A stretch of DNA of 64,000 nt from assembly GCA_964057225.1 (NCBI GenBank), contig OZ059899.1:16430001-16494000 (forward strand), written 5' to 3'. This document shows, one piece after another, positions 1,876 through 21,000 of this stretch; positions within the stretch are counted from its first letter, which is position 1, and the number at the start of each line of letters is the position of its first letter. Made by a program: the position numbers and the translations under genes. Below the pieces are notes generated by a model, which ran no database searches, was not told where the DNA came from, and saw only the letters and a list, made by a program, of their open reading frames with translations. This stretch comes from Auanema rhodensis. Its lineage: Eukaryota > Animalia > Nematoda.

Positions 1876-2464
1876 TTGTTTTTTTTTCTAACAAATTACT
1901 TAAGATTAACGTAATATTGTGATTATTAATGTATACATAAATATATGAATTATTGAGCCAACTTCATAAAATGAGAAACATAATATGTACGTTAAACGGA
2001 GAAATACTCCAAAATAAACTTTGTTTTCTAAGCTTCTGAAACTGCGGTTAGGTCGAGTAACGTATTATAGACGACTCTTGAAATGTCAAGTTGATGTCCT
2101 TGTCTACTAGTTACTACTTTCATCTTTTCTCTCTCCCACATGTCTACATTGCATCATCGAAAGTTCAATTTTCTACCCTAGTGTCTTCATCCACCTTCAG
2201 GCACTTGAACACTACAAGGCGTACTTCCAAATAAGCAGAGATCTAGTTTTACAGAGGTTTACTTCGATTTACAACTTGTTTCAAAGCAAATATGAACTAC
2301 GAATGTTATATTCTTTGAAAATATAAGCACGAAAAAACATGTTACATATTTTGGAGGCTTTGGAAGCTGCATAACCATCGTTCGTTCAGTTTGCCTCAAC
2401 AACATTCGCTTGCATCTACTGCCGAGTTTCAATTCGATCCTCTTCAATCCAACTCATCGAACAA

Positions 2465-4096
2465 ATGATGAAAAATGTAAAAAGTCTATTTTCCATAAAA
2501 TCCATAACACTTCTGTGTCTTTGTATTTCCACTAGTTTACTGCTTCTCAGCATTTTAAGCATTTTGTTGGTAGCTAAGGATGTGCACGATTTTCAAGCAG
2601 GCGCTATGGATGAATTGAATGGCTTTAAGGTTTAACAATTGTAAGTTTTATTGTTTTAATTTTGTTTTTTAAGTATTGGGCAGATTTGGCTTGGAATGAT
2701 ATGACGTCTATTACGCTAAGACAACCTCGATCTGCTCATCGTGCTTTTTTGAACAGTGGAGATTTTACTTCCGGAGCTGCTTACAGGTTTCTAATTTTTA
2801 TGATGCCCTTGACTTACCTACCTTTTGTTTCGCAAAGAGTCTAAAAGTGAAAATCGATGAACTAATCAAGTTTTTAGGCCACCCAATCCACCCTATGCTG
2901 AACAACCCCCTTATCGCGAACAATTAGTCAGAATATCAATGGATACACAATGCGGTAAATAGACAAAACTCTATTGGTTAAACTAAAACTGTTTAAAACA
3001 TGTTGATCACACAAAACGATCACTGAAAACTGCCTGTTTAGACTGTGCAGCTAGAGCTAACACATGCCCCCCCGGTCCACCCGGTTCTCCAGGAGAGCCA
3101 GGAGAGAATGGAGGTAAATCAAACATAGTTATATAGATAAATAGATCGCAACTAAAACATTTGTAGAGGCAGGCAATGTTGGTGAACCAGGAAAACCCGG
3201 AATAAATGGAATATCACTTATATCTACAGACGAAACTGAGGAAAACATGGGATGTATAATATGCCCAATGGGACCACCTGGACCCATGGGACATCCAGGA
3301 CCTCAAGGTTTACCTGTAAGAGTGTTTTATTTCTTAAGTCAAATAAACGTCAATACTTAGGGAAGACAAGGCTTTAAAGGAAGACCGGGATTGCCTGGTC
3401 CAAGAGGTCCACCAGGCCTTCCAGGACCACTTGGAGATATTGGTCCACCGGGTAACAAAAATTGTGAACAAATAAATCGTATAACATTACTATGTCAGGA
3501 ATATCTGGACCAATTGGCCCACCTGGAGAACCAGGAAATGACTCGATAAAACTCATAGGATTACCGGGACCTGAAGGTCTTCCCGGACCGTTAGGCCCGG
3601 CTGGTTTGCCTGGTCCCCCCGGTAGAGATGCTCGCCCTAGTCATCCCGGACCTACGGGTCCTCGAGGTCCCCCAGGAAAACTTGGAGAGAAAGGAATACC
3701 AGGAGAAATTGGCTACGTAAATTAGCATATTAAAGCATGAAAGGTCAATCGGTTAATGTTTTCAGATCGGGGCTCAAGGAGGTCCTGGTAAAGATGCATC
3801 ATATTGTCCATGTCCACCAAAAACTAGAACACAGTCAGAATTCGTAATCGAAAATTCAAATCAAGAACAAGATGTGTTTGGTAAGGATATTAGAATCACA
3901 ATGTGAATGAAAAAATGTTTCAGTAGAATCAAAAAGCCATGCAGAAGAGAGCGAGACTAGGGAAGAATATAGACGAAAGTAAGAAGGAATCACTCTAAAA
4001 CTAGCTCAATTCAAACATTTTTTCAGATTAATTGCTCGTTTGATGAAAAAAAGACGGTTAGCTGCTCTCAGAGCTGCAGCTCGACAAGTTGTATAA
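2465..4096 (+). CDS. Nematode cuticle collagen, multi-exon
   Basis: ATG at 2465 is followed by a hydrophobic N-terminal segment and a Col_cuticle_N-like region ([17 protein letters not shown]), an RxxR site (RQPR), Cys clusters ([17 protein letters not shown]; [11 protein letters not shown]), Gly-X-Y blocks and C-terminal [10 protein letters not shown]. The last exon ends [15 protein letters not shown] at 4094-4096. Confidence 0.93.
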
Positions 4097-4110
4097 AGCC
4101 ATGAATATAT

Positions 4111-4116
4111 AATAAA
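4111..4116 (+). terminator. Probable polyadenylation signal of the collagen gene
   Basis: AATAAA 15 nt after the stop codon; AT-rich context lowers its specificity. Confidence 0.45.
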
Positions 4117-4801
4117 GTTTTAAAAACGCCTTACTCCCGTCATATATAAACTTCTTTAGTAATTTGAGATTTTTAACATTATGAAGAACAGAAATTAACA
4201 CTATAAAACAAAGAAAACATCATGATTATATGCTAGGAAGAATTAAAGAATAAGTTTTTGTATTAAAAACTTTTACGAAATGTTGGAGTGTAAAGTTATG
4301 AAATTACAAAGGGAAAAGCAATGAAAGTACAAAATTATCCTGATTGAGATTATTGACTCAGGATATATATGTATATCATATGATTGTACTTTGCACATAA
4401 AAGTACATAAGAAGAACAGGTAATAAGTGTATAAATTATAGATGGGAACGCTTAAAAGGTCATTTGTGTCATTCTGTAGAGAATATGGATTACATTCTTA
4501 TTTAAAATTGAAAAATCGTTTAAATGAATCAATTACCAAGCACACTTTTAAACGTTAACATCGGAAAATGATTCAAAGTACCTTCTAGATATAGATACTA
4601 CAAATTTCTCCAAATTCTTTAAGTTATTCGAATAAGAGAATTATTAATCTTTATAGTTCTAACGGAGCATAAAACAATCTTGAAAGATATCTTAGCATAA
4701 TAATCCACATGAACAAAGAATGGAAAAAAATAACAATAACAAAAAGGATCAACAAGGAAAAATGTGGAAAATAGTAAAAAATAAGTGACTTACTCTTATT
4801 A

Positions 4802-5842
4802 CTATTTGTCAACTAATTCAATTTTCTTTAAATGCAAAAAGCAAACAGGTGCTACATCATTATCTTCATGAACTATGACCTAAAAATAGTTGATATTGAC
4901 GTCGAAAACGTTGGTGTGAAATAGAATTACCTCTTTCTCTATAATATTGATTTTCTTTATGAAAAGAGGACAGTCTATAACAAAGGTCTCATATTCTCCT
5001 CCCTCTCCACACGGATGAACACCATATTTCTCATTCAATGTTAACATTGTGGGCTCGATCTTGGTTAATGTATCGCAGTAGTTTACAAGAATGGTTAGAT
5101 GATACCTCACTCAATAATAGGCCTAAATGCTTTCTATTTAACCCAACAGCAGCCACTTTGATGATTATGGCTTTCACTTCCTCTTCAATCATTTCATGTA
5201 ATAACTCCTAAAATATTAAACCATCTAGCGATCCCATGTTATTGAGATAGTAAAAGCTGAATATTGAGCATTGTAAGTACCTTTTGTTCTCGTTCCCACA
5301 AATAACAAAGAGGAACTAAGCCTAAACGTTCGCAAACATTCTCAACACGCAACTTCTGGTAGGTGGACAGAATAGCCCCGGCCGACACGCCTATGTACAG
5401 CAATGTATAGACGGTATCCTGTTTCAATATACCTTTAACTGATGGATGCTTCTTCTTGATCTCTTCAAGTAGGCTATACAGGTCTTCAACTTCATCTCCC
5501 TCGGTCGGCTAATACTCAAAATTCACGAATTGAGGGTGAATGTGCAACATACCTCGTAATTATTTTTCTGATTAACCGAGCCTCCCGTAATAACTTTTCT
5601 ATACAATGGTATTCCCATAGCATCGCTATATAACTATGCTTCCGATTAAAACCTCACACTAGACAAAAACATACAGACACACCTTCTGCTCCGACACTTT
5701 GATACATGAACGAATCCAGTTCTGTTACGGGGGTCGGAGGCAGTAAATTGGCCAATGCCACTATTCTATGTCCATCTTTTTGAGCACACATCATATTGTA
5801 ACAACTATCTTTACCTCCAGAAACTAACCCAACGACGTCCAT
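4802..5842 (-). CDS. dph-6: Diphthine--ammonia ligase (diphthamide synthase, PP-loop ATPase), multi-exon
   Basis: [17 protein letters not shown] (PP-loop SGGKDS), [39 protein letters not shown] and [21 protein letters not shown] are DPH6 signature segments. The last exon reads [28 protein letters not shown] (stop at 4802-4804). An in-frame ATG at 5851 is an alternative start. Confidence 0.93.
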
Positions 5843-6160
5843 CACCTGCATCTGAATGTTTTTGTACTTGTACTAAACCGCGTTAAACATAAGGCTAGCC
5901 TATATACCCCACAGAACAAAATAATCACATAGACATTTATTACGAACAAGCGTAATTTTGATACACCATTCTCCGATAAAATGCTGCTAAGGCGAAAAGG
6001 TTGAACGACCTGGCAATGTCCGTGACAATGACAATAGTACAGAAGAAAAATAGCAAAAAAAATCTGTATCAAGCATAGCACTACAAGAAAATATATTATC
6101 TACACATTGGAATCCAAGTGATCAGAACCTCAATCAAATATAATATACAATGCAATCGAA

Positions 6161-7002
6161 TCACGAAAGATATGACAACTCCTCACGTGTTTTCTCCTTA
6201 TGATGAGCAGCAAGCTGCTCGGCGGCAAAATTAACGTACTGCTGATGCTGTTCTAAAATAAAAATTTGAAGTACATAGATACTTTATGATTATTACCGTC
6301 TAGCTTAAGACAGAGAGCGGACTCATATTCCTGGCGAAGACGCATCTCCTGCTCTTTCAACAAACGTTCACAGATCAATTGAACCTGAAGAGGCATGAAT
6401 ACAAGGATTACTACTGTTATATTATACAAACCTGCTTCAAACTGAACTGTGGTTTTTCAGCAAGTGTAACTAAGACGTTACTGGATGAAGGCTTAGGGCA
6501 AGAAGATTCTCCTTCAGAATCGGATCCAGACTATAACAGAAAAGATAAGTTTGGAATGAATATATGTCAACTAACATGGCTAGGGGATTCAGGAGCTCTG
6601 TACTCTTTGTTTGGTTTGTTTTCATCAGTAATATCATCAGTAACGGTTCTTCTAGGAATAAGCTTTCTCCTCTTAAGATTTTTTATCTCAGATCTCAAAT
6701 AAGCTCCAAGTTGAGAAGAGGTAAGCTGGCAGCCCGCGATGGATGAAAAGTGATTGTTCGATTCCTGCTAAAACAGAATTTCTCAATAAAATTTGTGTTT
6801 GTTAGATTTTAATTACATTTTGGATTTTTTGCGCAAAGGTGCTACTGGTGGAAGGCAAGCTTGCAGCAATAGTCCCGATCTGGGCACGGAATGGTGAACA
6901 ATGAGCAGTTTGACGAGCTCTTTTAGCCTCATTGCTGTAACCGTCTTCGGTTAAGTAAGAATCATACTCATGAGGCCTTTTTAAGGCTAATCCACATGCC
7001 AT
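6161..7002 (-). CDS. akir-1: Akirin, multi-exon
   Basis: N-terminus MACGLALKRPHEYD...EAKRAR (akirin MAC.TLKR motif and NLS). The C-terminal exons give KPQFSLKQVQLICERLLKEQEMRLRQEYESALCLKL..EQHQQYVNFAAEQL...ELSYLS-stop, with the akirin SY[VL]S terminus. Confidence 0.93.
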
Positions 7003-7729
7003 TATTCTAAATAGAACTGTTTAAAATATCTTTTGAAATATATTCGAAACCTTGACGATGAAGTCATAAGAAAGGTCGAAAGAGAACGACCAGTTAAGTT
7101 TTTTTGGGAAACAAAAAATATATCATTTTTAAAAAGAGACGCCACGTAACACAATGGTTTTATTACGTGACGCGCGAGCAGATCATGTGAGACAAGTTAG
7201 AGTAGATCAAAAAAATTGTATTTTTTTCGGTGGAATGTTCTATTTGAAAAGGGAAGATATAGAACTACAAAAAATAAGGAGCAACAATAAATGTAAAAGT
7301 GAGGAAAACCTTATTGGAATCACAACGTTAAACGACGAAAGTCGATATCAATCGCAGACGCACACTGGTGGGCGGGGCTACCGTGACCGGCTCCTGCAAA
7401 TCTTAAAAATACCGCGCGTTCAAACTTTGACAGTAGAGCGCTAATCAAATTGAGCTAAAATTAAATAAAAGCTTAAACATAAAGAATAAATAATAACAGG
7501 AAATGTCAAAAATTGGGTATATGATAAGTAAAACAGTTTTTTAAAAAAAAATTTTAAATTAAACTTGTGGTACTTTTTTAAAAAAAAGTGGAATTGTTTT
7601 CCTTGCGTTAATTTTTTGCGAACTGGTTGACAAATAGAAGTGATGACTTTTTTTTATTGATTTTAAGTAATTTTGTATGAAGTAAAATTTGTGCTATTAT
7701 TATTAATATTAATAATATTAATATTACAG
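7003..7729. promoter_or_regulatory. Divergent intergenic/promoter region between akirin (-) and the POML gene (+)
   Basis: About 730 bp between head-to-head start codons, with a CpG-richer core (CACGTAAC, TTACGTGACGCGCG near 7143-7176; GC box GGGCGGGG at 7370-7377) flanked by T/A blocks. Both ATGs are closely preceded by splice-acceptor-like sites (TTTAG-AATA-ATG; TTACAG-ATG), consistent with trans-splicing. Confidence 0.5.
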
Positions 7730-9280
7730 ATGTTAGGTAAGCTATTTTTGTTTCTGATATCTGGCTTTCTTGCCGCCTACGTTGCAAATATGTTGTAAGT
7801 TACAAGATTTATTCCTTCATAGTAAATATATAGTGTTTCATTACCTTTTTTTCATATAGGCTACATATGGGGTCTAACAAGCGAGTTTATAATCATCGAC
7901 CAGGTCATTGTGAGGAAATCGAAGGAATTAGTTGAGTTATTTTCATTCTGTTCTGATTGCCGAATCATTTCTCCGGATTCTAGAGCATGGTTCCGAAGAT
8001 ATTGTTGTGATTGAAAGTCTAGGATTAGCATTTATTTCTTCGGGTCTCTTTTACATGCAAGAACGCGCCAAAGAAGTTACTGGACAAATATTCGTTTATA
8101 ACTTAAGTCAATCTATTAAAAAAGCCAAACCCCTTCCAATCAAAGGTTTTGCTAATTTGGTACAGAAAAATTGACAATCTTTATTACAATTATTGCTTAA
8201 GGCGTCATTCGCTCCCCACGGAATGAGCCATTTTGAATCAGATGGCGTATTACGATTGTTTGTTGTAAACCACGAAACTCCATCTTTTGCCCATTCAATC
8301 GAAATCTTCCGCTACGATAGTCAGAAAAATGAACTTATCCACGAAAAAACTGTAAAAGATGAGAAATTCATTAGGCATGTCTTCATCAAATTGATAATGT
8401 CTATCATTTAAATTGGCTTCAGACCGAATGATGTTGTTGCCATTTCGGCAGATTCGTTTATAGTGTCTAATGATGGATCAGCCCAAACACCTCTCTCTAA
8501 TCTGTTTGAAGTTTTATTATTTTTGAAGGCCGGATCTGTAGTTTTTTATGACGGAAAAGTTTAACGCCTAAGAGATACATTCTTAAATTTAACCAGCTAA
8601 TTATAGGAATCTCATTATATTCTTGAGAATGCTGTATCCCCTAATGGAATTATTATGGATCAATCAAAAAAATATTTATTAGTATCTCATCCTAATGCTA
8701 AGAGTATAGTTGTTTATAAATTCGGCAAAGTATATTACGCTTAATGTTGACCAATTCACGTGTTGAACTTTAGGATTACAAGAATACACTAGAGGTAGTT
8801 CAGGAAGTAGAGCTTAAAACAACCGCCGATAACTTATTCATTGATCCTTCTGGTTCAGTTTGGACGGTAAGATTATTTAAAACACTAATTGTTTTACCCA
8901 TCTGTTGTATCATATTTCAAATTAAATGTTTAAGTGTTTTAGAAGTTTTCATATTGTAATTGCAGGGTGCTCATCCAGTCCTGAAGGACGCTTTCGGTCA
9001 CATGGGGAACCCTGATGACCTTAAAGAGTATGCGCCGTCCCAGGTTATTTAGCACGTACATTGAGCTGTATTCATTAATCTAATATAGATATTGAGAATT
9101 GATTTTTCCAAAGATTGGAAATCATGGGAAATCACGGAAGTTTATGTTGATGATGGTCGTCAATTATCTGCTAGTTCCAGCGCAGTATTGTACAAAGACC
9201 AACTTCTTCTGGGAACCGTTTTCCGTCAGCTTGTACACTGTCACATTTCTGATAGGAAAACATTGCAAGCTCGTTCTTAA
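7730..9280 (+). CDS. Paraoxonase/arylesterase-like protein (POML/MEC-6 family), multi-exon
   Basis: N-terminal anchor, then NKRVYNHRPGHC, EHGSEDI (PON GSED motif), FAPHGMS, LFVVNH, RPNDVVA, SPNGI, TTADNLFID, VWTGAHP, PSQ-ILRI and DDGRQLSASSSAV...LLLGTVF. The PON Ca2+-ligand motifs are retained. Confidence 0.92.
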
Positions 9281-9454
9281 ATACTTAATGGCTGATATCT
9301 TATCTTTATAATAACAATAACCGTACACGTAAGTTTATAAATTTGGTTCAACTTGAAGACATTGATTTTCCGCTAAATATTGCATGTTTACACGATTTGA
9401 AATGTTGAATTATTAATTACGAGATCATATAAAGCATGATTCTAGCGAACTATA

Positions 9455-11013
9455 TTAAGTTATCTGTGGATTTATGATATCGCACAATAATAATCGGCTA
9501 TCTTCTCCGCCAATCAGCATCCGATCAGCGTGGAAAATCTACAAAATAATGAATTGGTAAATAACTGGATGTAATAAGACACTGACCACAGAACTACTAG
9601 CAGGTAGAGTAGCTCCATCGTTTGAATATGGTTCAGTTATAACCCATGATAATTGGTCTTTCTGAAAAATGATGAGATCAATATGTACATAGAGTTTCTA
9701 TATTACTTGTATTCTTATACGCAAAACTTGGCTTGGGGAAACTTTTTTGTTTTTATTTGTTTTATCCTCCAGTTTACTGTACATCCAGTACTGATGTAAT
9801 ACGGGATGCAGAGAAACCCAAATGTCCCCTGCAAATAAGATTTCATAGAAATCCGATTTTAATGTTATCATATGCTGTGAACACATTTAGGTGAGTCATT
9901 TGTTTTACCTGAGGTTTCATCAACATGTAATCCGGAGGGAGATGATAATAAAGCAATATCTGTACGATATGTCAATGAAAGATCTTTATCCAATGTATAC
10001 ATCTTTATATTCTGAAAATCAGTGGTTAAACAAGTAAACCGCCAAGCTAGGATTCTGACCTCAGATATCATTGAGGCCACATATAAAATATTTTTCTTTG
10101 AATTTACGGCTAGAGCAGACGGTGATGGCAAACGTGATAGTGCTACAGATACTGAATTTCCATTGAAATAATAAAGAGTTCCAAAAGAATTCTTAACAAA
10201 AAAATTAATTTTTAGTTTAAAAAATAGACGTTTACATAAAGAATAAGCTCCAATGTTTGCAGTAAACCAGACTCGAACCAGCTTTCTCGGGCTACATAGA
10301 ATTTATCCGGTCCAACAACAACTATGTCGGAAAGACTAAATACGAATACATATTTATTATATTCATGTGTTGAGATATACCTGATGAATGATGGATCACA
10401 AACACTTTTTCGATGTATAAGTATGTCCTTTTCTTTGTTATAAATCAGCACCTCAACGCAATTTTTGTTTATAACATATAGAATAGCACGACCCTTGTTA
10501 TAATATACGGATATTTTAGAAGGGTGAAAATCTTTCTATAAATTAGTTGATGGTACTTAAAATTTACAATATATACTATTATAGTACCTGTCGAAAATCT
10601 TTTCCTTGTATTTTCAACTCTCGTGGACGAGTACCAGGATTCTCTCCTTTGATCTGATAGACATATATTTTTCCAACAGCATTCTCTTGTTTCCCAGAAG
10701 TGATAAACACTTCTCCACTTTCTGATATAAGTTCAAGACCAGGAGCACCAGATTCTAAATTAGAGTTTAAATCTGTTAATGGAGAAATGAAACATTTAAA
10801 ATTTCTTACCCATTGATTCCAAAAGCTTACAGGGGCCAGGCGCATGATTATATACTCGTTTATTAAAGTCAAAAATAAGCCTAAAATGGTTTCTATTTAT
10901 TTATATGAAAAGCAGAAAACTTGCATAATTTTTATAGATAAACTACATATTATTACTAGGACAGCCCAAAGAGCTAAACGATGAAGAATTTCTTTTGGGT
11001 TAGAAGGTAGCAT
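9455..11013 (-). CDS. mec-6: MEC-6-like paraoxonase-family protein, multi-exon
   Basis: FDFNKRVYNHAPGPC, HRKSVCDPSFISLSDIVVVGPDKFYV, ILYVASMISE, LLSSPSGLHVDETSGDIWVSLHPVLH, SPSQVLRIRIQ and SWVITEPYSNDGATLPASSSVV closely resemble MEC-6 as I recall it. It lacks GSED/HG/ND/DN ligands. Orthology to mec-6 versus a paralogue such as poml-1 was not tested. Confidence 0.8.
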
Positions 11014-11622
11014 TCCTGATTTTGGATTACTGGAGAAATATGTGCTAAGGAGAGCAGCTGGCTAAAGCTCTACCATAGAGGACTTGAAGACTTGAATGCG
11101 ATCGATATGAGAGCAACCGGGTGTCCATTGTATTATGTCCTAGCAGATGGTCAATGGTTAGATCGATTAGTATTGAAATATTTATCAAGCTTTTTAAATA
11201 GCTAGTATGCCACGTTGATTTATAATATTTAAAAATTGATAAAAGTTGTGGTGGAATTTATTATTTTAAAAAATTTACAGTATCCCTTATGACACCTGTT
11301 AAGTTTCACTGCTGAAGTTTCTCTAAAATTTTGACATCATCGAATTAAATCATTTCCAGTAATAAGGAATAAAATGTAATTCTTCATTAAGTATAAAAAT
11401 TGGCAGATTGGATTATTTACTTTGAACAAACTCATTAAAATTTTTGATAGTTGGAGCAAAACTATTTTTCTGGCGAGTTGTAAGCTTCTATGTCATAATT
11501 TAGATAGAAGCTGGTTAAAATTTGAATATTAGGTCTCACCACGAACAAAATGAAAATGCGTGCTATCCTTTTCCTCATCCTCATTATCAAGATTTAATTT
11601 GCTTCAATTTATTCAGGAACAG

Positions 11623-13769
11623 ATGAGACAAAGTGATTATCACATCCAGATAAACATTTTTGGAGACTCCATTGACATAATAAATGAGAAAAATATATCA
11701 TTGGACTGGCTTTTGGTAATAATTTCTAATAGGATTTGGAACATTTTAAATTTTAGAAAAATGTTGGGATATATGATTTCATTATTCTTGAGATTCCTCA
11801 AACTAATCGGAACAAAATGGAACAAGAAAAGCCGTATATCAACTTCGAAACACCGCAGCATAATAACCTTGTGTGGGCTCCAAAGTACTCTGTAGATGAC
11901 TCCTATACTTGGGGCTGCTCTACACCGCTTTATAATACATTTCAACCTCCTTGTTTAAATGTGAGCTCAGTGAGAGTTGTAGGTAACAATAAAACCGCTG
12001 ACCAAAACAAATTTGTTTTTCAGCCGAAAACCAATACAATGATTATGAAACTAACAATCAGCTGCTCCCGTTTAATTTAAGTCCTTTAAGATCCGGTAAA
12101 GGTACATAATACGCTCACAAAAAATATAATTTATTTCAGACGATCACCACTCTGAAGCTTCCGAAGCTGATATTCAACTGTTATCTTTAGATTCAAATTT
12201 GTTGAAAGTTGTAGGTAAAGAAAAATGAATGTAACAAAATACATGAACTATTTTAGATAATAATCATGCAGAAAAAGAGTATTCTATGAATGAAGCTATC
12301 GAAATAGCTAAAGATGTAATTCAATATATGCTTTTACGAATAGAAGATGATAGCCAGTTTATTGAAATAAATAACATAAACACGAATAGTTCTGCCAAAA
12401 TGCAGAAGGCTGTTATGGAATGCTCTTTGTTCTCAGAGCCGTTTGAGATAACCCAGGTTTACGATAGGGGTTGTGAAACAGGAAATAATTCAGAACGCCA
12501 ATGGTAATATTCTGATTGTTAAGTTAAGAAATACAATTTTTGTTTAGTCTAGACAACAGCTCTAATTTATGTGAAATGAAGAATAGTTCTTTCTTCTCTT
12601 GTAAATCTTGTTAGTTTTCTAAAATGACTGTTCACTAACTTTTTTTTCAGATACTTCAGAAAACTCATTTGATACTAATGGTAAAGAATATAATGCTCTT
12701 TGTAGTGAAGCAGCAGAATATGAACTTCCTTCATCTGGAGATAGGATGTTAGAGTTTATTTTTAAAATGTTTAATTTTTAATTAATTATAGAGATAATCC
12801 AACAACAGTTTTAAAACGAAAAGATGATAACATAAATGGAAAGATTGTAAATTATTCTTCTTCAACCATCTCAAGGCGTAATTCTGAATCTGATTTTAGT
12901 ATATCTGGCGATAGGTATATAATTATATTTTGACCTTGAGATGATCAGTTTACATTAAAGAGATAACGAGGATTTCTCTCACTCTAATTTTGAAAAATCT
13001 GTGTTATCATACTCATCAACTGATCAGAAAAATAATTTAAAGTTAGAATTTATCCTTATATACTTCCCATCTTAGCATATTTCAAGGTCAAACTCAAGTG
13101 ATAAAAAAACAAATGATATAGTAACAGATGTAAAGATTGCAAATTATTCTAACAGGTATGATTATTCTTTGTACCTTTTGAATATTTTATTGACAAGTTA
13201 TTATTTATTGTGATTTAAGATGTAATTTATCTGCAGATAAGAAGAAGTCGTTTGTATTTTGCCAGTTTCCTGTATGTTTGAGCTAATTGAGATCTTATGA
13301 GTTGTGATTTTTCAGGAATGTGGAAAAAAACTTGTTTTCAATTCCGTGAGAACTGCTGGGTTAGAAGAACATGTTCGAATACATGCTGGGGTGCCAAGAG
13401 AATGTGCACACTGTGGAGTTAAATATTCTAACATATATCAGGTACATTTTAATGAGTTTTTATTATTTAAGTAATTCAACTTAGCTAAGAAGACACCATT
13501 TATCCGTTCATCCGGATGTTGTTTTCGAAACACCAGATACATGCGATAGTGATCGAGAAATATTACTACAAGTATTACCTCTATGTTTGCCTGGCATCGA
13601 GTACAAAAGGTAAGGTATTTTGTGATATTAGATACTTCTTAGATTCCTTCTTAGATTTTATTTCAAACGACAACGCCAAAGTGCTCGACGATTTGAAAAA
13701 TCAACACGAAAATTGGTAAGTTTTACTATTATTTATAAGATTTTAAAGGTTAAAATTGGATTTTTTTAA
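11623..13769 (+). CDS. Multi-exon C2H2 zinc-finger protein with long Ser/Asn/acidic low-complexity N-terminal region; start and end approximate
   Basis: A chain of short exons bounded by GT..AG. Spliced exons at about 13220-13610 read FVFCQFP/ECGKKLVFNSVRTAGLEEHVRIHAGVPRECAHCGVKYSNIYQ/LRRHHLSVHP, i.e. C-x4-C-x16-H-x3-H followed by C-x2-C-x12-H-x4-H. The ORF track misses this because the exons are short. Confidence 0.7.
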
Positions 13770-14857
13770 AACTAAGTATTTAACCTCATATTGGCAAGTT
13801 ATATTATTTTTTTCAAATTTGATTCTATCGAAATACCTGAAATTATTTAAAAATTAAGTACAACTTACAGTAAATCAACTCAAGACCACATCTGTCAATT
13901 TCTTCAGCATTCTGTGCAGAGATCTCAGAACCATATTTTTGTATTCTTGAAATAAAATTTCTTATTTGTCTTTTCGATTTTCTTAAATCAATTTTATATG
14001 TGTACAAACATACGATGGGGCTTCAAGAGTAAGTTGAAACATGCTGGTCGAACCGTGAGAAGGTTCACAACATGAACTTCTACTTTCAGGCATTGTGCAA
14101 ACGTTGAAATTATATTTATTTTTAAATCTGAAAAAAAAGATTTGCAAATAATTCTTAGAAACGAAACATGGATATCGTACGTTATATGCTCCATGACTTT
14201 TTGTGTTTCTTGTGAAGATTCATTGTAACTTTCGGTTCGTTCATCTTCATAAACTAAAATAATGAATTTCTGACAAATAAATAATAGCTTTACATCAAAA
14301 TGAAATATATACCAAACTATCTTCAATAGAAATTTCCTTTTGTCTGACAGACTTCAAAGTTTCGCCATAAATACAAACTTGAAGAAAACGATCAAAACAC
14401 ATTATCCTAAATAAACTCCTTCGATGATTGCCAAATAAGACTTTTCGTTTTTATATTTCTTGGTTAGACCGAAATTCGAAAACATTGAAACTTGAGCGTA
14501 CTGCAACTAACATAAGGGTAATTGCCAAAAGTTTCAGATAGCAAGATGATTCATTGATACACCCACTAGAAACCCTTATATCTTTTCAGACAAACAATTT
14601 AAAATTATTTTCTGAAGTCTCTGAAATTTTCAATAATCTGCTTGAAGTCTTCTTTTATGAGTTTCATCGAAACATCAGGTAGAATCTTTTGATAGAATGT
14701 TTGGTTGTACGTTAACCAAGTTCTCTTCATAGATATTGAGTAAGATTCAGATGCTGAAGCTTACTTGGTTGAAGCTATGCTGCAATTTTGAAGACAATAT
14801 TGCTACTTGATAAATTTAAATCTTTTCCTAGAATTATTAAAAATATTTTGTGTTTAG

Positions 14858-15369
14858 TCCGTGGCCATGTCGATCAAACAATTCTTAAACCAGAGGTTGA
14901 TGGAGTATGTTTCTTTCTTTTTTTTATTATTATTTCATTAATATTAAACGATAATATTAGAACAATTAATAAAAAAAAGATACATTTAATCATTTGATAA
15001 TTGAATTGCATTTAGCGTTCCTCGTTTAAAAATCTTCTACGGAGATTGAAGCGACAAGTCAAAGCTGCTTGTATTCTCGCAGATGTTGCTCACCTAGGTA
15101 ATTTGTTAAATATATTTTTAGAATGTTTTTATATTTTCTATAATGATTGAGGATTGATATTAATTTTGCTTTATAGGCCCGGAGACAAATGCTAGAGAAG
15201 CTGAAGCAAAGAATTCACCAAATGTAAGCTGTGTGATCAAAGTCATCAGACTGAAAAATGCCCCGGCCTAAACAAGCATAAAGGAGAATGCAGGAAGGCG
15301 AAAGTTTGCAAACTTTGTGAGACAAACAAATACAACTTCATGATATGTCCCTGTATTAAACAGAAATAA
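14858..15369 (+). pseudogene. Degenerate spliced zinc-knuckle (CCHC, BEL/Pao Gag-like) remnant
   Basis: 15223-15369 reads CKLCDQSHQTEKCPGLNKHKGECRKAKVCKLCETNKYNFMICPCIKQK*: one intact C-x2-C-x3-H-x4-C, a half knuckle (HKGEC) and a third with His replaced by Tyr. This frame has stops just upstream and is out of frame with the preceding exon-like segments. Confidence 0.5.
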
Positions 15370-15738
15370 ATTTGAATATTTAAAATTGTTGAGTTTAAGG
15401 AAATTATAACATATTGTTTCGGGGACGGAATGTTTCGTGAATAACACGAAAAAGAAAAACAATTCACGAGTTTCTCTCAAACAAATAAATATGAGAAATT
15501 GGTTTTAAATGGAAATATTTTATAATCATTTTTAGAAATATTTTTAGACAACTCGGCTGAATTTACGTGATCTCACATCTCACGTGCGTGGGATAGACGT
15601 GTATAATAAGCAAAAGAAAAAGAGCTTAGTATAAAAACTGATACCACAGCGCGTAGACGTATATAAAGACTTTTTAATATTAATTTAATATACAATACAA
15701 ATAAATCATTTTGTTATAAATTGTTTATCTACAATACA

Positions 15739-15957
15739 ATTTGTTCACAAAAAAGTTCAGGCTGTAGGCACTGTGTGCCCGGTGAATGTTCCTTTTTCTC
15801 AAAAATTATCAACTAAAATCAAAAATAAATATTTTGAGATTGGGTATTCAGATGTGTAGATTCTGAATTTACAAATGAGATTTGACTAGGACTTCTCAGT
15901 TTTCCGGAAAAACGGTTTATATCAACCCCATCCACAAGATTTGTTCACAAAAAAGTT
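15739..15957 (-). repeat. Solo, diverged, inverted copy (~1.1 monomer) of the 200-bp satellite
   Basis: TTGTTCACAAAAAAGTT occurs at 15741 and 15941 (exactly 200 apart). It carries the reverse complements of satellite segments, e.g. CAGGCTGTAGGCAC, GGGTATTCAGATGTGTAGA, ACTTCTCAGTTTTCCGGAAAAA and GGTTTATATCAACCCCATCCACAAGAT. Confidence 0.95.
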
Positions 15958-15989
15958 GTTCCGATATTGAATTTATTTGATTTCTATTC

Positions 15990-16023
15990 ACAAATTTATT
16001 AAATTTTTTATTAAAATCCAGAA
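15990..16023. repeat. Left arm of a 34-bp inverted repeat (partner at 17957-17990)
   Basis: ACAAATTTATTAAATTTTTTATTAAAATCCAGAA; its reverse complement matches 17957-17990 at 33 of 34 positions. Confidence 0.9.
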
Positions 16024-16032
16024 GAAAAAAAG

Positions 16033-16082
16033 GTCCTAGCCAAATTTAACGAGAAAATTCAGATTCTACACATCTGAATACC
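16033..16082 (+). repeat. 50-bp forward fragment of the satellite monomer
   Basis: GTCCTAGCCAAATTTAACGAGAAAATTCAGATTCTACACATCTGAATACC aligns without gaps to satellite GTCACAGCCAAATCACACCAAGTAATTCAGATTCTACACATCTGAATACC. Confidence 0.9.
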
Positions 16083-16252
16083 TCAGTTTAGTTTAATCTT
16101 AGTTAGAAAACGATTATTTTTTCTTTTTTAATTTGTTTCGAATAAACTTTGTTAACACGAAAATTCAAAATCGGACATTTATTTTGAAATTATTGTGAGA
16201 TTGGTCTATGAACAACCGGAAATTTCAAAAATAGTTTTTGAAATTATACGCA

Positions 16253-16313
16253 AACGTGGACTTACGTGGAAAATGGTATATAAGGAATTGCTTTCCATAA
16301 GAAATCAGTCAGT
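16253..16313 (+). promoter_or_regulatory. Candidate RNA polymerase II core promoter (two ACGTGG boxes, TATA, initiator)
   Basis: AACGTGGACTTACGTGGA (16253-16270), GTATATAAG (16276-16284) and TCAGTCAGT (16305-16313). The A of the first TCAGT (16307) is 30 nt from the first T of the TATA box. Confidence 0.5.
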
Positions 16314-16348
16314 CGACATGTCAACTTCGGAGCTGGTCTACTTCTTCC

Positions 16349-16940
16349 TTCCAGGACCCTGACTCCTACTCTTCTGAAGTAGATGAGTGTGAACGGTGGG
16401 CCCGACCGTCTCTGCTCTTCAACTACAAAAGTGGTGTCTCGGTCCCAGCTATGAACGCTTCATGGAATCAACTTCGCTGGATCTTCATGGAATCAACTTC
16501 GATCAACTTCGCTGCTTCTTCGTGGTATCATCTTCATTTTTTTTTGGTTATGTACTGTTTATTTCCAGGTCCCTGACTCCTACTCTTCTGAAGTAGATGA
16601 GTGTGAACGGTGGGCCCGATCGTCTCTGCTCTTCAACTACTAAAGTGGTGTCTCGGTCCCAGCTATGAACGCTTCATGGAATCAACTTCGCTGGATCTTC
16701 ATGGAATCAACTTCGATCAACTTCGCTGCTTCTTCGTGGTATCATCTTCATTTTTTTTGGTTATGTACTGTTTATTTCCAGGTCCCTGACTCCTACTCTT
16801 CTGAAGTAGATGAGTGTGAACGGTGGGCCCGACCGTCTCTGCTCTTCAACTACAAAAGTGGTGTCTCGGTCCCAGCTATGAACGCTTCATGGAATCAACT
16901 TCGCTGGATCTTCATGGAATCAACTTCGCTGGATCTTCAA
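16349..16940 (+). repeat. Tandem repeat, ~2.7 copies of a 213-214 bp unit
   Basis: CCAGG(A/T)CCCTGACTCCTACTCTTCTGAAG starts at 16351, 16565 and 16778. Each unit ends in degenerate ATCAACTTCGCTG minisatellite copies. Confidence 0.95.
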
Positions 16941-17049
16941 GAAATCAACTTCGCTGCTTCTTCGTGGTATCAACTTCGCTGGGTCTACGTGGTATCAACT
17001 TCGCTGGGTCTACGTGGTATCAACTTCGTTGCTTCGGCGGGACAAGAAA

Positions 17050-17127
17050 TCTCGGAGTCTACTCAACTTCACTGGTTCTACTTTTTTTTTTTTCGGTAGG
17101 GCCAGTGAAGTTGAGGAGACTCCGGGA
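17050..17127 (+). ncRNA. Candidate pri/pre-miRNA-like hairpin, copy 1
   Basis: 32-nt arms (17050-17081 / 17096-17127) give 28 Watson-Crick pairs, 3 U-G wobbles and 1 A-G mismatch, with loop U12CG. The fold is visible in the sequence; expression is unproven. Confidence 0.4.
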
Positions 17128-17392
17128 CAATGGTACTAACCGAGTCATCGTGTTAGTGCCCACCGTCCCCGCTGGATCTTCGTCGTAACAACTTCGCTGG
17201 GTCTACGTGGTATCAACATCGCTGGGTCTACGTGGTATCAACATCGCTGGGTCTACGTGGTATCAACTTCGCTGCTTCTTCGTGGTATCAACTTCGCTGG
17301 GTCTACGTGGTATCAACTTCGCTGGGTCTACGTGGTATCAACTTCGCTGGGTCTACGTGGTATCAACTTCGTTGCTTCGGCGGGACAAGAAA

Positions 17393-17469
17393 TCTCGGAG
17401 TCTACTCAACTTCACTGGTTCTACTTTTTTTTTTTCGGTAGGGCCAGTGAAGTTGAGGAGACTCCGGGA
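17393..17469 (+). ncRNA. Candidate pri/pre-miRNA-like hairpin, copy 2
   Basis: Arms identical to copy 1; loop U11CG. Confidence 0.4.
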
Positions 17470-17734
17470 CAATGGTACTAACCGAGTCATCGTGTTAGTG
17501 CCCACCGTCCCCGCTGGATCTTCGTCGTAACAACTTCGCTGGGTCTACGTGGTATCAACATCGCTGGGTCTACGTGGTATCAACATCGCTGGGTCTACGT
17601 GGTATCAACTTCGCTGCTTCTTCGTGGTATCAACTTCGCTGGGTCTACGTGGTATCAACTTCGCTGGGTCTACGTGGTATCAACTTCGCTGGGTCTACGT
17701 GGTATCAACTTCGTTGCTTCGGCGGGACAAGAAA

Positions 17735-17811
17735 TCTCGGAGTCTACTCAACTTCACTGGTTCTACTTTTTTTTTTTCGGTAGGGCCAGTGAAGTTGAGG
17801 AGACTCCGGGA
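17735..17811 (+). ncRNA. Candidate pri/pre-miRNA-like hairpin, copy 3
   Basis: Identical to copy 2, 342 bp downstream. Confidence 0.4.
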
Positions 17812-17956
17812 CAATGGTACTAACCGAGTCATCGTGTTAGTGCCCACCGTCCCCGCTGGATCTTCGTCGTAACAACTTCGCTGGGTCTACGTGGTATCAA
17901 CTTCGCTGGGACAAGAAATCTCGGAGTCTACTCAATTTCACTGATTATATTTTTTT

Positions 17957-17990
17957 TTCTGGATTTTAAAAAAAAATTTAATAAATTTGT
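17957..17990. repeat. Right arm of the 34-bp inverted repeat, immediately before the satellite array
   Basis: TTCTGGATTTTAAAAAAAAATTTAATAAATTTGT, 33/34 identical to the reverse complement of 15990-16023. Confidence 0.9.
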
Positions 17991-18003
17991 CTTTATAATA
18001 TTT

Positions 18004-21000
18004 TATTTTTGTTTGATTATAGTTGATAATATTGGAGAAACATTGACAATAACCGGACACAACGTGCCTACAGCCTGAACTTTTTTGTGAACAAATCTTG
18101 TGGATGGGGTTGATATAAACCTTTTTTCCGGAAAACTGAGAAGTCACAGCCAAATCACACCAAGTAATTCAGATTCTACACATCTGAATACCCAAGTTGT
18201 AACTATTTTTGTTTGATTATAGTTGATAATATTGGAGAAACATTGACAATCACCGGACACAACGTGCCTACAGCCTGAACTTTTTTGTGAACAAATCTTG
18301 TGGATGGGGTTGATATAAACCTTTTTTCCGGAAAACTGAGAAGTCACAGCCAAATCACACCAAGTAATTCAGATTCTACACATCTGAATACCCAAGTTGT
18401 AACTATTTTTGTTTGATTATAGTTGATAATATTGGAGAAACATTGACAATCACCGGACACAACGTGCCTACAGCCTGAACTTTTTTGTGAACAAATCTTG
18501 TGGATGGGGTTGATATAAACCTTTTTTCCGGAAAACTGAGAAGTCACAGCCAAATCACACCAAGTAATTCAGATTCTACACATCTGAATACCCAAGTTGT
18601 AACTATTTTTGTTTGATTATAGTTGATAATATTGGAGAAACATTGACAATCACCGGACACAACGTGCCTACAGCCTGAACTTTTTTGTGAACAAATCTTG
18701 TGGATGGGGTTGATATAAACCTTTTTTCCGGAAAACTGAGAAGTCACAGCCAAATCACACCAAGTAATTCAGATTCTACACATCTGAATACCCAAGTTGT
18801 AACTATTTTTGTTTGATTATAGTTGATAATATTGGAGAAACATTGACAATCACCGGACACAACGTGCCTACAGCCTGAACTTTTTTGTGAACAAATCTTG
18901 TGGATGGGGTTGATATAAACCTTTTTTCCGGAAAACTGAGAAGTCACAGCCAAATCACACCAAGTAATTCAGATTCTACACATCTGAATACCCAAGTTGT
19001 AACTATTTTTGTTTGATTATAGTTGATAATATTGGAGAAACATTGACAATCACCGGACACAACGTGCCTACAGCCTGAACTTTTTTGTGAACAAATCTTG
19101 TGGATGGGGTTGATATAAACCTTTTTTCCGGAAAACTGAGAAGTCACAGCCAAATCACACCAAGTAATTCAGATTCTACACATCTGAATACCCAAGTTGT
19201 AACTATTTTTGTTTGATTATAGTTGATAATATTGGAGAAACATTGACAATCACCGGACACAACGTGCCTACAGCCTGAACTTTTTTGTGAACAAATCTTG
19301 TGGATGGGGTTGATATAAACCTTTTTTCCGGAAAACTGAGAAGTCACAGCCAAATCACACCAAGTAATTCAGATTCTACACATCTGAATACCCAAGTTGT
19401 AACTATTTTTGTTTGATTATAGTTGATAATATTGGAGAAACATTGACAATCACCGGACACAACGTGCCTACAGCCTGAACTTTTTTGTGAACAAATCTTG
19501 TGGATGGGGTTGATATAAACCTTTTTTCCGGAAAACTGAGAAGTCACAGCCAAATCACACCAAGTAATTCAGATTCTACACATCTGAATACCCAAGTTGT
19601 AACTATTTTTGTTTGATTATAGTTGATAATATTGGAGAAACATTGACAATCACCGGACACAACGTGCCTACAGCCTGAACTTTTTTGTGAACAAATCTTG
19701 TGGATGGGGTTGATATAAACCTTTTTTCCGGAAAACTGAGAAGTCACGGCCGAATCTTACTCGGAATATCAGATTCTACACATCTGAATACCCAAGTTGT
19801 AACTATTTTTGTTTGATTATAGTTGATAATATTGGAGAAACATTGACAATCACCGGACACAACGTGCCTACAGCCTGAACTTTTTTGTGAACAAATCTTG
19901 TGGATGGGGTTGATATAAACCTTTTTTCCGGAAAACTGAGAAGTCACAGCCAAATCACACCAAGTAATTCAGATTCTACACATCTGAATACCCAAGTTGT
20001 AACTATTTTTGTTTGATTATAGTTGATAATATTGGAGAAACATTGACAATCACCGGACACAACGTGCCTACAGCCTGAACTTTTTTGTGAACAAATCTTG
20101 TGGATGGGGTTGATATAAACCTTTTTTCCGGAAAACTGAGAAGTCACAGCCAAATCACACCAAGTAATTCAGATTCTACACATCTGAATACCCAAGTTGT
20201 AACTATTTTTGTTTGATTATAGTTGATAATATTGGAGAAACATTGACAATCACCGGACACAACGTGCCTACAGCCTGAACTTTTTTGTGAACAAATCTTG
20301 TGGATGGGGTTGATATAAACCTTTTTTCCGGAAAACTGAGAAGTCACAGCCAAATCACACCAAGTAATTCAGATTCTACACATCTGAATACCCAAGTTGT
20401 AACTATTTTTGTTTGATTATAGTTGATAATATTGGAGAAACATTGACAATCACCGGACACAACGTGCCTACAGCCTGAACTTTTTTGTGAACAAATCTTG
20501 TGGATGGGGTTGATATAAACCTTTTTTCCGGAAAACTGAGAAGTCACAGCCAAATCACACCAAGTAATTCAGATTCTACACATCTGAATACCCAAGTTGT
20601 AACTATTTTTGTTTGATTATAGTTGATAATATTGGAGAAACATTGACAATCACCGGACACAACGTGCCTACAGCCTGAACTTTTTTGTGAACAAATCTTG
20701 TGGATGGGGTTGATATAAACCTTTTTTCCGGAAAACTGAGAAGTCACGGCCGAATCTTACTCGGAATATCAGATTCTACACATCTGAATACCCAAGTTGT
20801 AACTATTTTTGTTTGATTATAGTTGATAATATTGGAGAAACATTGACAATCACCGGACACAACGTGCCTACAGCCTGAACTTTTTTGTGAACAAATCTTG
20901 TGGATGGGGTTGATATAAACCTTTTTTCCGGAAAACTGAGAAGTCACAGCCAAATCACACCAAGTAATTCAGATTCTACACATCTGAATACCCAAGTTGT

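Follow-up and report, generated by a model that had tools for sequence, protein, structure and literature searches.

A non-coding block of tandem repeats, 1.7 kb in length, heads an array of a 200-bp satellite in the germline assembly of the nematode Auanema rhodense. Copies of that satellite meet here in opposite orientation, and the block is the asymmetric core of their junction. The reading that we prefer, with moderate confidence and on the evidence of the sequence, is that this cassette constitutes a non-coding transcription unit of low copy number, assembled from repeats, which may be a source of hairpin RNA and is located at the satellite junction. It is not an established miRNA cluster. 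The window, that is the whole stretch of DNA analysed, covers 64,000 nucleotides of contig C7; positions given without a contig name refer to it.

Organisation of the Cassette

The modules of the cassette, together with the satellite copies that flank it, are listed below in the order in which they occur.

15739–15957, minus strand: inverted 200-bp satellite, about 1.1 monomers, left arm of a large inverted repeat (219 nt, 86% complementary to 18078–18296)
15990–16030: left arm of a 41-nt inverted repeat bracketing the cassette, 95% complementary to 17950–17990
16038–16089, plus strand: satellite-monomer fragment of 51 nt in direct orientation, forming a small inner foldback with 15843–15908
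16219–16247: upstream palindrome GAAATTTCAAAA..TTTTGAAATT, 11 of 14 positions paired, kept in all four promoter copies
16254–16259 and 16264–16269, plus strand: two ACGTGG boxes, of which the diverged copy keeps the proximal one only
16277–16284, plus strand: TATA box TATATAAG, within a 22-nt block
16305–16313, plus strand: initiator-like sequence TCAGTCAGT, with A16307 as the putative start
16349–16928, plus strand: 2.7 units of 214 bp, 98% matches
16890–17910, plus strand: 3.0 units of 342 bp, 97% matches
17050–17127, plus strand: hairpin copy 1, with 32-nt arms and a U-rich loop, seen as an inverted-repeat pair and by folding
17393–17469, plus strand: hairpin copy 2, seen as an inverted-repeat pair and by folding
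17735–17811, plus strand: hairpin copy 3, seen as an inverted-repeat pair
17919–17943, plus strand: half hairpin closing the cassette, a solo copy of the left arm, with a 3-mismatch match at 17923–17944
17950–17990: right arm of the 41-nt inverted repeat, including the AATAAA
17980–17985: AATAAA, conserved at all three loci
18004–64000, plus strand: 200-bp satellite array, 229.9 copies in the window

Each 214-bp unit consists of a 107-nt unique part, variants of a 25-mer and a T-rich tail, with a TTTCCAG resembling a nematode splice acceptor at its start, while in each 342-bp unit about eight to nine copies of a 25-bp minisatellite accompany the hairpin, and a tail of 48 nt has a small stem of its own. 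The tandem units and the minisatellite, the terminal AATAAA and the satellite edge had all been reported in a preliminary description of this DNA and were found where it had placed them, and the unit arrays support its suggestion of tandem amplification. The satellite is met again up to C7:16,508,944, which yields an array of about 61 kb in all, with 6 kb in between unread. Derivation of the cassette itself from the 200-bp satellite was considered and rejected, local alignment scores being no better than those of shuffled sequences. The repeat sequences of the cassette were absent from the papers retrieved in a literature search, and a text search of the preprint describing the A. rhodense genome found nothing relevant to it.

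A Conserved Promoter-Like Block

The paired ACGTGG boxes, the TATA box and the downstream TCAGT lie exactly where they were first reported, with A16307 positioned 30 nt from the first T of the TATA box. This promoter-like element is 97–99% identical across the three loci that carry a complete cassette, and its sub-elements and their spacing recur in a fourth copy of 76% identity; the promoter claimed originally is supported as a conserved promoter-like element. The 22-nt TATA block has four matches in the 181-Mb genome (at up to three mismatches) and none in the control; all four are cassette copies and they differ among themselves at a single base. The spacing between TATA box and initiator amounts to 30 nt in three copies and, by manual count, to 31 nt in the 76%-identical relic, where the palindrome is 93% complementary. 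Within 118 kb of non-satellite DNA of this genome, TCAGT occurs at the same spacing in 1 of 256 TATAWAWR sites; the pairing is uncommon, but not decisive alone. The block has the TATA box and initiator of a putative RNA polymerase II core promoter, and both are retained in the paralogues.

A Single Hairpin Species

The preliminary description envisaged six long hairpins, three in each type of unit; what is present is one hairpin species in three tandem copies. The stem of the 342-bp unit comprises 28 Watson-Crick pairs, three G-U pairs and one mismatch over 32 positions. Its folding energy is −54.3 kcal/mol on the plus strand (z = −9.3 against shuffles) and −44.9 kcal/mol on the minus strand (z = −9.6), and the plus strand z-scores range from −9.3 to −10.6 for a stem of 33 bp. 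The 214-bp units fold no better than shuffled sequences, as judged from the 5' half (z = −1.56 on the plus and −1.91 on the minus strand), the 3' half (+0.48 and −0.65) and the whole unit on the plus strand (−0.23). Comparison with shuffles on both strands therefore upholds the hairpin of the 342-bp unit and dismisses those of the 214-bp units. The plus strand fold is more stable by 9 kcal/mol and has the three G-U pairs; the strand asymmetry proposed from such pairs does exist, all three wobbles falling on the plus strand, and it represents a mild bias, since by our own estimate three transitions would all fall on that strand by chance with a probability of about 1/8.

The origin of the hairpin can be traced within the cassette. 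Part of its left arm agrees with the 25-mer consensus, at 17 of 19 positions, and as a copy of the cassette's own 25-mer the arm indicates that the hairpin is a young inverted duplication which was later copied in tandem. The solo half-arm at the end of the cassette likely represents the state before inverted duplication, and no hairpin is present in the relic at the far end of the array. Among the six full hairpin copies in the genome the stems are identical, apart from one disruptive G>T in one copy on contig C5, and no compensatory change was seen. A distinct target gene was not found for the arm tested, all 14 of its genomic matches (at up to three mismatches) lying inside the three cassettes. 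With hpRNA or endo-siRNA sources the locus shares an inverted duplication of sequence present elsewhere and a near-perfect stem, its arms being much shorter than those of the fly loci.

Recurrence and Conservation in the Genome

Recurrence at other satellite edges, raised as a question in the preliminary description, was established by a genome-wide search: the whole cassette is also present at two other satellite arrays, at C7:16.70 Mb and C5:5.87 Mb, giving three copies genome-wide, each lying between inverted copies of the same 200-bp satellite. The three loci correspond to C7:16,446,180–16,448,010, C7:16,700,283–16,701,640 and C5:5,871,070–5,872,672. The three loci, on two chromosomes, share a common order of modules: inverted satellite, spacer, promoter block, a number of 214-bp units, a number of 25-mer arrays each with a hairpin, the half-arm, the 41-nt inverted repeat and the direct satellite array. 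The numbers of 214-bp and 342-bp units are 3 + 3, 4 + 1 and 3 + 2, with 3, 1 and 2 hairpin copies, and such differences between loci are those that unequal crossing-over predicts. On C5 the 41-nt inverted repeat is degenerate and the junction segment 70% identical.

Relics of the cassette occur at the far ends of both arrays. That at the far end of the window's array is 76% identical and keeps the palindrome, the proximal ACGTGG, the TATA box and TCAG, with their spacing, while its downstream part has drifted to about 70–76% identity. No copy of the promoter lies near other 200-bp arrays found at C7:16.275 and 16.299 Mb, which implies that an array can exist without the cassette.

Between C5 and C7, identity is 98% for the promoter (164/167) and 97% for both the unique part of the 214-bp unit and the hairpin module, compared with 70% for the junction, 88% for the end piece and 87–92% for the satellite. 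A pooled Fisher test of the best-kept segments against their flanks gave p = 7e-8, where the left spacer was counted among the flanks, as was the portion of the 214-bp unit rich in 25-mers, and gap columns were scored as differences. When each indel is counted as one event, substitutions amount to about 2% in the promoter and about 4% in the left spacer, a modest contrast, and the higher divergence of the satellite can stem from array-specific homogenisation. Consequently, a recent copying event or a gene-conversion tract would account for the conservation profile as well.

Alternative Interpretations

A repeat-rich protein-coding gene was considered, given that no stop interrupts any of the three plus strand frames across the 25-mers, that this strand carries ORFs of 107–144 aa, that 342 is a multiple of three and that every 214-bp unit has acceptor-like TTTCCAG and donor-like GTATCA sites. 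Against this, each frame is stopped once per 342-bp unit, the matching ORF of the sister copy at C7:16.70 Mb contains four TGA codons with TAA in other matches, and a C>T change creates a TAA in most 214-bp units. The ORF that was searched found no homologue among 5.8 billion protein clusters, and no paralogues occur outside these loci. The coding interpretation is close to refuted, and with these stops in the sister copies and the lack of homologues the initial judgement that no credible ORF is present holds good; the ATG at 16318 opens only 14 codons. A 23-aa small ORF in the 214-bp unit was also discarded, its copies carrying non-synonymous changes, a frameshift and stops. For the satellite, a word search of public read assemblies with one of its ORFs gave no match, and no genomic copy was found of one candidate spliced junction in which a 59-nt GT..AG stretch is removed, a result that does not bear on splicing of the RNA itself. 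We also consider it very unlikely that the cassette encodes a polycistronic pri-miRNA cluster, to which the preliminary description had likened it, with hairpins that Drosha/Pasha and Dicer would process into mature miRNAs. The attributes of a miRNA hairpin (about 33–35 bp, single-stranded flanks and a better-than-chance fold) are found in the 342-bp unit only, where the 33-bp stem, the flanks and a loop of about 12 nt would suit a pre-miRNA, and the promoter-like block lies upstream on the same strand. There are also matches to miRNA covariance models, the best being mir-1303 at 36.1 bits against a gathering score of 107 and the remainder scoring 32–36 bits against gathering scores of 56–70. 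Since they are below threshold and to unrelated families (mir-1303, mir-4887 and MIR395), they bear the mark of a generic hairpin and leave intact the earlier statement that no known miRNA or Rfam family is recognisable here (best score 36 bits, gathering scores 56–107). The cluster-like appearance results from unequal crossing-over of one hairpin species, the 214-bp units lacking significant folding; moreover, the stem is almost perfect with equal z-scores on both strands, the older paralogue has no hairpin and the number of hairpins varies between loci.

Two further possibilities attribute the structure to the satellite arms. If the cassette were the middle domain of a foldback-type mobile element, with the inverted satellite arms as its long terminal inverted repeats, one would look for long inverted arms of tandem repeats, and these are present, although very unequal in the window. 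At each of the three loci the cassette sits between inverted copies of the satellite, both arms on C5 are multi-copy arrays, and different DNA follows beyond the left arm from one locus to the next. The arms, however, are grossly unequal and variable (1.1 versus about 305 monomers here, with left arms of 1.1, 1.5 and at least 9 monomers across the loci), the 41-nt inverted repeat does not hold up on C5, neither a target-site duplication in the flanks read nor a transposase came to light, the cassette ORFs have no relatives, and there are just three copies genome-wide; a mobile element is therefore improbable. A stronger candidate, still on balance doubtful, is that the cassette is junk trapped between opposed satellite arms by fold-back or inversion and then segmentally duplicated, its promoter block being the unused relic of a captured gene. 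The nested inverted repeats, the varying unit numbers, the relics at far array ends, the absence of the cassette from other 200-bp arrays and the want of any match for the tested arm outside the cassette are all compatible with such a by-product, as are the identical hairpin copies, which imply a recent origin. It accounts less readily for the persistence of four promoter sub-elements with their spacing in a paralogue that has drifted so far downstream, and for the fact that identity between chromosomes is highest in the promoter, the hairpin module and the unique part of the 214-bp unit.

For the preferred reading, a non-coding transcription unit, the following course of events can be proposed. 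The block of palindrome, ACGTGG boxes, TATA box and TCAG would act as a working RNA polymerase II promoter, driving a plus strand non-coding RNA of about 1.3–1.7 kb that would end near the conserved AATAAA. The sequence shows that an inverted duplication of the cassette's own 25-mer generated the sole real hairpin, which was copied subsequently with the 342-bp unit. The cassette may make hairpin RNA, and its 33-bp near-perfect stems, if processed at all, would be cut by Dicer and serve as a young hairpin-RNA source of the endo-siRNA-like kind. A more elaborate version appears quite improbable to us: a promoter-driven RNA that is germline-expressed or stage-specific, with minisatellite-derived hairpins that would seed small RNAs and with read-through, or trans-splicing at the TTTCCAG of every 214-bp unit, that would tie it to the transcription and chromatin state of the satellite arrays, making the cassette a dedicated regulator at the head of the array rather than a passenger.

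Relation to Programmed DNA Elimination

The palindromic chromosome-break signal SFE has been described for A. rhodense and O. tipulae (10.64898/2026.08.27.747507; PMC13060919). Like SFE, the cassette has a palindrome near a border between satellite and genes, in the same genome. It differs in that the core GGCT-N-AGCC, as read from the published site on chromosome 5 (our contig C6), is absent from window positions 1–18100 and in that the hairpin arms share nothing with SFE. The hairpin was also rejected as a break signal on the absence of GGC-NNN-GCC from the same interval. The 13-mer SFE pattern YWGGCTNAGCCWR has 43 sites genome-wide versus 4 in the control, while the alternative pattern GG-N4-GGC-NNN-GCC-N4-CC occurs at chance level. 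Two SFE-like matches near the second C7 cassette proved to be Lon protease coding sequence and not signals.

The rightmost motif match on C7 (16,203,610) has unique DNA on both sides, the Lon protease gene of that type, found in a single copy, is situated farther out, at 16.69 Mb, and megablocks of 176/351 bp on C7 start only between 16.850 and 16.875 Mb. Taken together, these positions indicate that the window is probably retained in body cells. For retained and eliminated DNA, the genome preprint gives HiFi coverage of about 236x and 29x, respectively. The 200-bp arrays lie in zones adjoining programmed-DNA-elimination boundaries of A. rhodense. The core of the break signal has a perfect match 12 kb away from the cassette copy on C5.

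Comparison with Known Systems and Significance

Among the hpRNA endo-siRNA loci of Drosophila are tandem hairpin loci and the hpRNAs of D. simulans, which silence young selfish genes (PMC10292708, PMC10317233). The cassette resembles them in having a young hairpin formed by inverted duplication of nearby sequence and repeated in tandem, near-perfect stems, a rapid turnover of copy number and a place among repeats. It departs from them in that its arms measure only 32 nt, whereas those of fly hpRNAs extend over hundreds of nucleotides, and in that the sole matching sequence found is the cassette itself, with no separate gene. In nematodes, Dicer products usually act via 22G RNAs made by RdRP.

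Polycistronic animal miRNA clusters, such as mir-35-41 of C. elegans, likewise place several pre-miRNA-sized hairpins behind a single promoter on the same strand; in the cassette that promoter is putative. The hairpins of the cassette are identical and recent rather than diverged paralogues, with no Rfam family match and no conservation beyond three recent loci. The foldback (FB) transposons of Drosophila, which have long inverted arms of tandem repeats around a non-repetitive middle, share with the cassette the enclosure of a middle piece by such arms; they differ from it in the ratio of the arms, 1 to about 305 monomers here, in the target-site duplications and transposase not seen here, and in its three copies. 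Satellite 2 of newts is a satellite DNA with its own snRNA-type promoter, and in the cassette, too, a putative promoter is linked to a satellite array and points into it, albeit once at the head of the array and not in every monomer. The conserved AATAAA precedes the array, so that transcription continuing into the satellite would be conjectural.

If the promoter is silent, the locus would be an ordinary product of satellite turnover. If it is active, the cassette would be a clean and very young hairpin-RNA gene that arose from a minisatellite through inverted duplication, with a relic of the stage before the hairpin preserved close by. The body cells of this nematode lose most of the satellite DNA, and the cassette would then provide a small locus at which to ask whether satellite-linked non-coding RNAs matter in such genomes.

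Structure of the cassette and its surroundings

The cassette constitutes a young, low-copy, non-coding repeat block located at an inverted satellite junction. Its promoter-like block predates the rest of the cassette and is also the more strongly conserved part, and its one type of hairpin derives from the minisatellite. All the sequence landmarks named in the preliminary description were found at the positions claimed, and they are listed here with the repeats of the region.

Features of the cassette (window coordinates)
15990-16030 and 17950-17990: 41-nt inverted repeat, 95% complementary
16254-16259 and 16264-16269: two ACGTGG boxes
16277-16284: TATA box, TATATAAG
16305-16313: initiator-like sequence, TCAGTCAGT
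16349-16928: 214-bp units, 2.7 copies, 98% matches (Tandem Repeats Finder)
16890-17910: 342-bp units, 3.0 copies, 97% matches (Tandem Repeats Finder)
17919-17943: solo copy of the hairpin left arm, then the same T-run, at the cassette end
17980-17985: AATAAA
18,004 to the window end: 200-bp satellite

The first T of the TATA box lies exactly 30 nt from A16307, and Tandem Repeats Finder located a 25-bp minisatellite within both the 214-bp and the 342-bp units. Window positions 1-15,700 hold fragments of ordinary genes such as collagen and diphthamide synthase. At 7900-10900 lie ORF pieces on both strands which we take to resemble paraoxonase; Pfam returned nothing for them at E up to 0.01, and their arrangement suggests two gene copies or relics inverted relative to each other. 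At 18189-18203, and in every 200-bp monomer, TACCCAAGTT is followed by GTAAC and then by a T-rich AUUUUUG run. TACCCAAGTT begins with 10 nt identical to the 3' part of the nematode SL1 spliced leader, and a donor-like GT comes next; the satellite could be derived from an SL1 RNA gene.

Folding and origin of the hairpin

In each 342-bp unit, arms of 32 nt pair to form a stem (28 Watson-Crick pairs, three G-U pairs and one mismatch) closed by a U-rich loop, and the structure folds at -54.3 kcal/mol on the + strand and -44.9 kcal/mol on the - strand (z -9.3 and -9.6, respectively, against shuffled sequence). The 214-bp unit folds no better than shuffled sequence on either the + strand (halves z -1.56 and +0.48, whole -0.23) or the - strand (halves z -1.91 and -0.65). 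Of the two hairpin types claimed earlier, one is therefore real, and the six long hairpins come down to three copies of it in tandem. As described earlier, all three wobble pairs read as G-U on the + strand, where the - strand would have A-C, but this is weak evidence for strand because three transitions would fall in this way with a chance that we estimate at about 1/8.

The left arm matches the 25-mer consensus at 17 of 19 positions, the right arm is its inverted copy, and a solo left arm is present at the cassette end. The hairpin therefore originated when a minisatellite unit of the cassette itself was duplicated in inverted orientation, and it was later multiplied with the 342-bp unit. 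Six full hairpins occur genome-wide (3, 1 and 2 at the three cassette loci) and their stems are identical except for one disruptive G>T, such that they offer no covariation.

Recurrence and relics

Whether the cassette recurs at satellite edges had been left to a genome-wide search, and in the assembly of 180,911,798 bases it was found at two other loci, with promoter regions showing 99% identity at C7:16,700,283, on the same contig as the window, and 97% identity at C5:5,872,672 (minus strand). The complete module order repeats with them: inverted 200-bp satellite, spacer, promoter block, 214-bp units, 25-mer/hairpin units, half-arm, 41-nt inverted-repeat arm with AATAAA and direct 200-bp satellite array. 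Numbers of 214-bp and hairpin units are 3 + 3 in the window, 4 + 1 at C7:16.70 Mb and 3 (250-bp variant) + 2 (367-bp variant) on C5; unequal exchange produced the cluster-like appearance. The left inverted arm comprises 1.1, 1.5 and at least 9 monomers at the three loci, the DNA past it is not alike among them, and the 41-nt inverted repeat is degenerate on C5.

Several separate 200-bp arrays occur on C7 (16.275, 16.299, 16.448-16.509 and 16.700-16.75 Mb), spread over about 500 kb of otherwise unique, gene-bearing DNA and proximal to the 176/351-bp megabase blocks, which begin only between 16.850 and 16.875 Mb; the arrays at 16.275 and 16.299 Mb lack a promoter copy. Immediately to the left of the second C7 cassette are tandem repeats of 45 bp and 135 bp in which GAAGGAGGAG is abundant (L003 1-570, C7:16,699,166-16,699,735), possibly a repeat-coding exon.

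Relics of the cassette (L019 and L018 are stretches read outside the window)
L019 8955-9300 (C7:16,508,955-16,509,300): promoter relic and diverged 25-mers, far end of the 61-kb array
L018 5944-6160 (C5:5,861,944-5,862,160): C5 relic, distal end of the C5 200-bp array

The array starting at 18,004 was encountered again as far as C7:16,508,944, and beyond it, in the same orientation, lie a 76%-identical promoter copy, the diverged 25-mers and then unique DNA. Alignment revealed that this relic retains the upstream palindrome, the proximal ACGTGG, the TATA box and TCAG, with a TATA-to-TCAG distance of 31 nt versus 30 nt in the window (our count). It carries no hairpin (z +0.71), the promoter palindrome being its only inverted repeat, and it looks like the cassette in its ancestral form. 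At ≤3 mismatches, the 22 nt surrounding the TATA box match the genome at only four places, exactly the four promoter copies, and these vary at one base. The C5 relic consists of a 97-bp piece of the 214-bp unit (93% identical) and two 25-mers, and lies directly against a tRNA-His gene of the opposite strand, with a tRNA-Pro gene 1.4 kb beyond.

Conservation between C5 and C7

Identity of cassette segments, C5 versus C7
Promoter region: 98% (164/167)
Unique 107 nt of the 214-bp unit: 97%
Hairpin module: 97%
Left spacer: 86%
25-mer-rich part of the 214-bp unit: 81%
End piece: 88%
Junction: 70%
Satellite: 87-92%

A pooled Fisher test of the contrast between segments gave p = 7e-8. One indel accounts for much of the left spacer's deficit, the spacer being about 4% diverged by substitutions alone versus about 2% for the promoter, and satellites diverge fast between arrays via homogenisation. 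For these reasons the profile fits, but does not prove, selection on a transcription unit, and a recent conversion tract would be expected to produce a similar one.

Location relative to eliminated DNA

The body cells of A. rhodense lack about 61% of the germline DNA, the lost part being mostly satellites, and the example break site reported is "chromosome 5, 16,502,174" (10.64898/2026.08.27.747507). We located this site as a palindrome centred at C6:16,502,175 and read from it the break-signal core GGCT-N-AGCC. The pattern YWGGCTNAGCCWR occurs at 43 genome sites against 4 in the control, and the sites include close doublets on C1, C3 and C6.

Sites of YWGGCTNAGCCWR referred to here
C7:16,203,610
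C5:5,884,755-5,884,767
C6:16,502,169-16,502,181

Window positions 1-18,100 contain no break-signal match. The rightmost C7 match, at 16,203,610, is flanked by unique DNA to either side and probably belongs to the small number of matches that are not breaks. This, together with a Lon protease gene at C7 16.69 Mb that is the only copy of its type and the position of the megabase blocks further out, suggests that both C7 cassettes lie 160-430 kb inside the boundary, in DNA that body cells keep. The C5 cassette is 12 kb from the match at C5:5,884,755, whose 13-mer is that of the published site except for the central base, and by this proximity it may fall within eliminated DNA.

Possible function

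The odds that the promoter-like block is a live RNA polymerase II promoter yielding a + strand non-coding RNA appear roughly even. The near-perfect stems might then be diced into small RNAs on the model of hairpin-RNA loci (PMC10292708, PMC10317233), to which we assign lower odds; the hairpin arm tested has no genome match outside the cassette at ≤3 mismatches.

Other readings were weighed against a transcribed cassette. A miRNA cluster is very improbable: Rfam yielded only sub-threshold matches to unrelated miRNA families (32-36 bits versus gathering scores of 56-107), which is what any clean hairpin of that size gives, and the earlier statement that no known miRNA or Rfam family was recognised stands. 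A repeat-rich coding gene might be suspected, given that the + strand across the 25-mers is open in all three frames and that a 107-aa ORF is present. Each 342-bp unit, though, contains one stop in every frame, most 214-bp units have a TAA produced by a C>T change, the corresponding ORF at C7:16.70 Mb contains four TGA codons and the ATG at 16318 opens only 14 codons. A six-frame genome search found relatives only within the same loci, and with the 107-aa ORF a word search of 5.8 billion protein clusters found no match. The earlier view that there is no credible ORF is thus upheld by the stops and the lack of homologues, and a coding gene is scarcely conceivable.

The surroundings of the cassette match a foldback-like layout, and a true foldback mobile element is improbable. 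That the cassette is an inert by-product seems unlikely, albeit a reading to be taken seriously. The preprint on this genome (10.64898/2026.08.27.747507) mentions neither the cassette nor hairpins nor promoters, and the repeat sequences were found in none of the papers searched. As an inverted duplication that has been amplified in tandem beside a satellite, the cassette is of a familiar kind.
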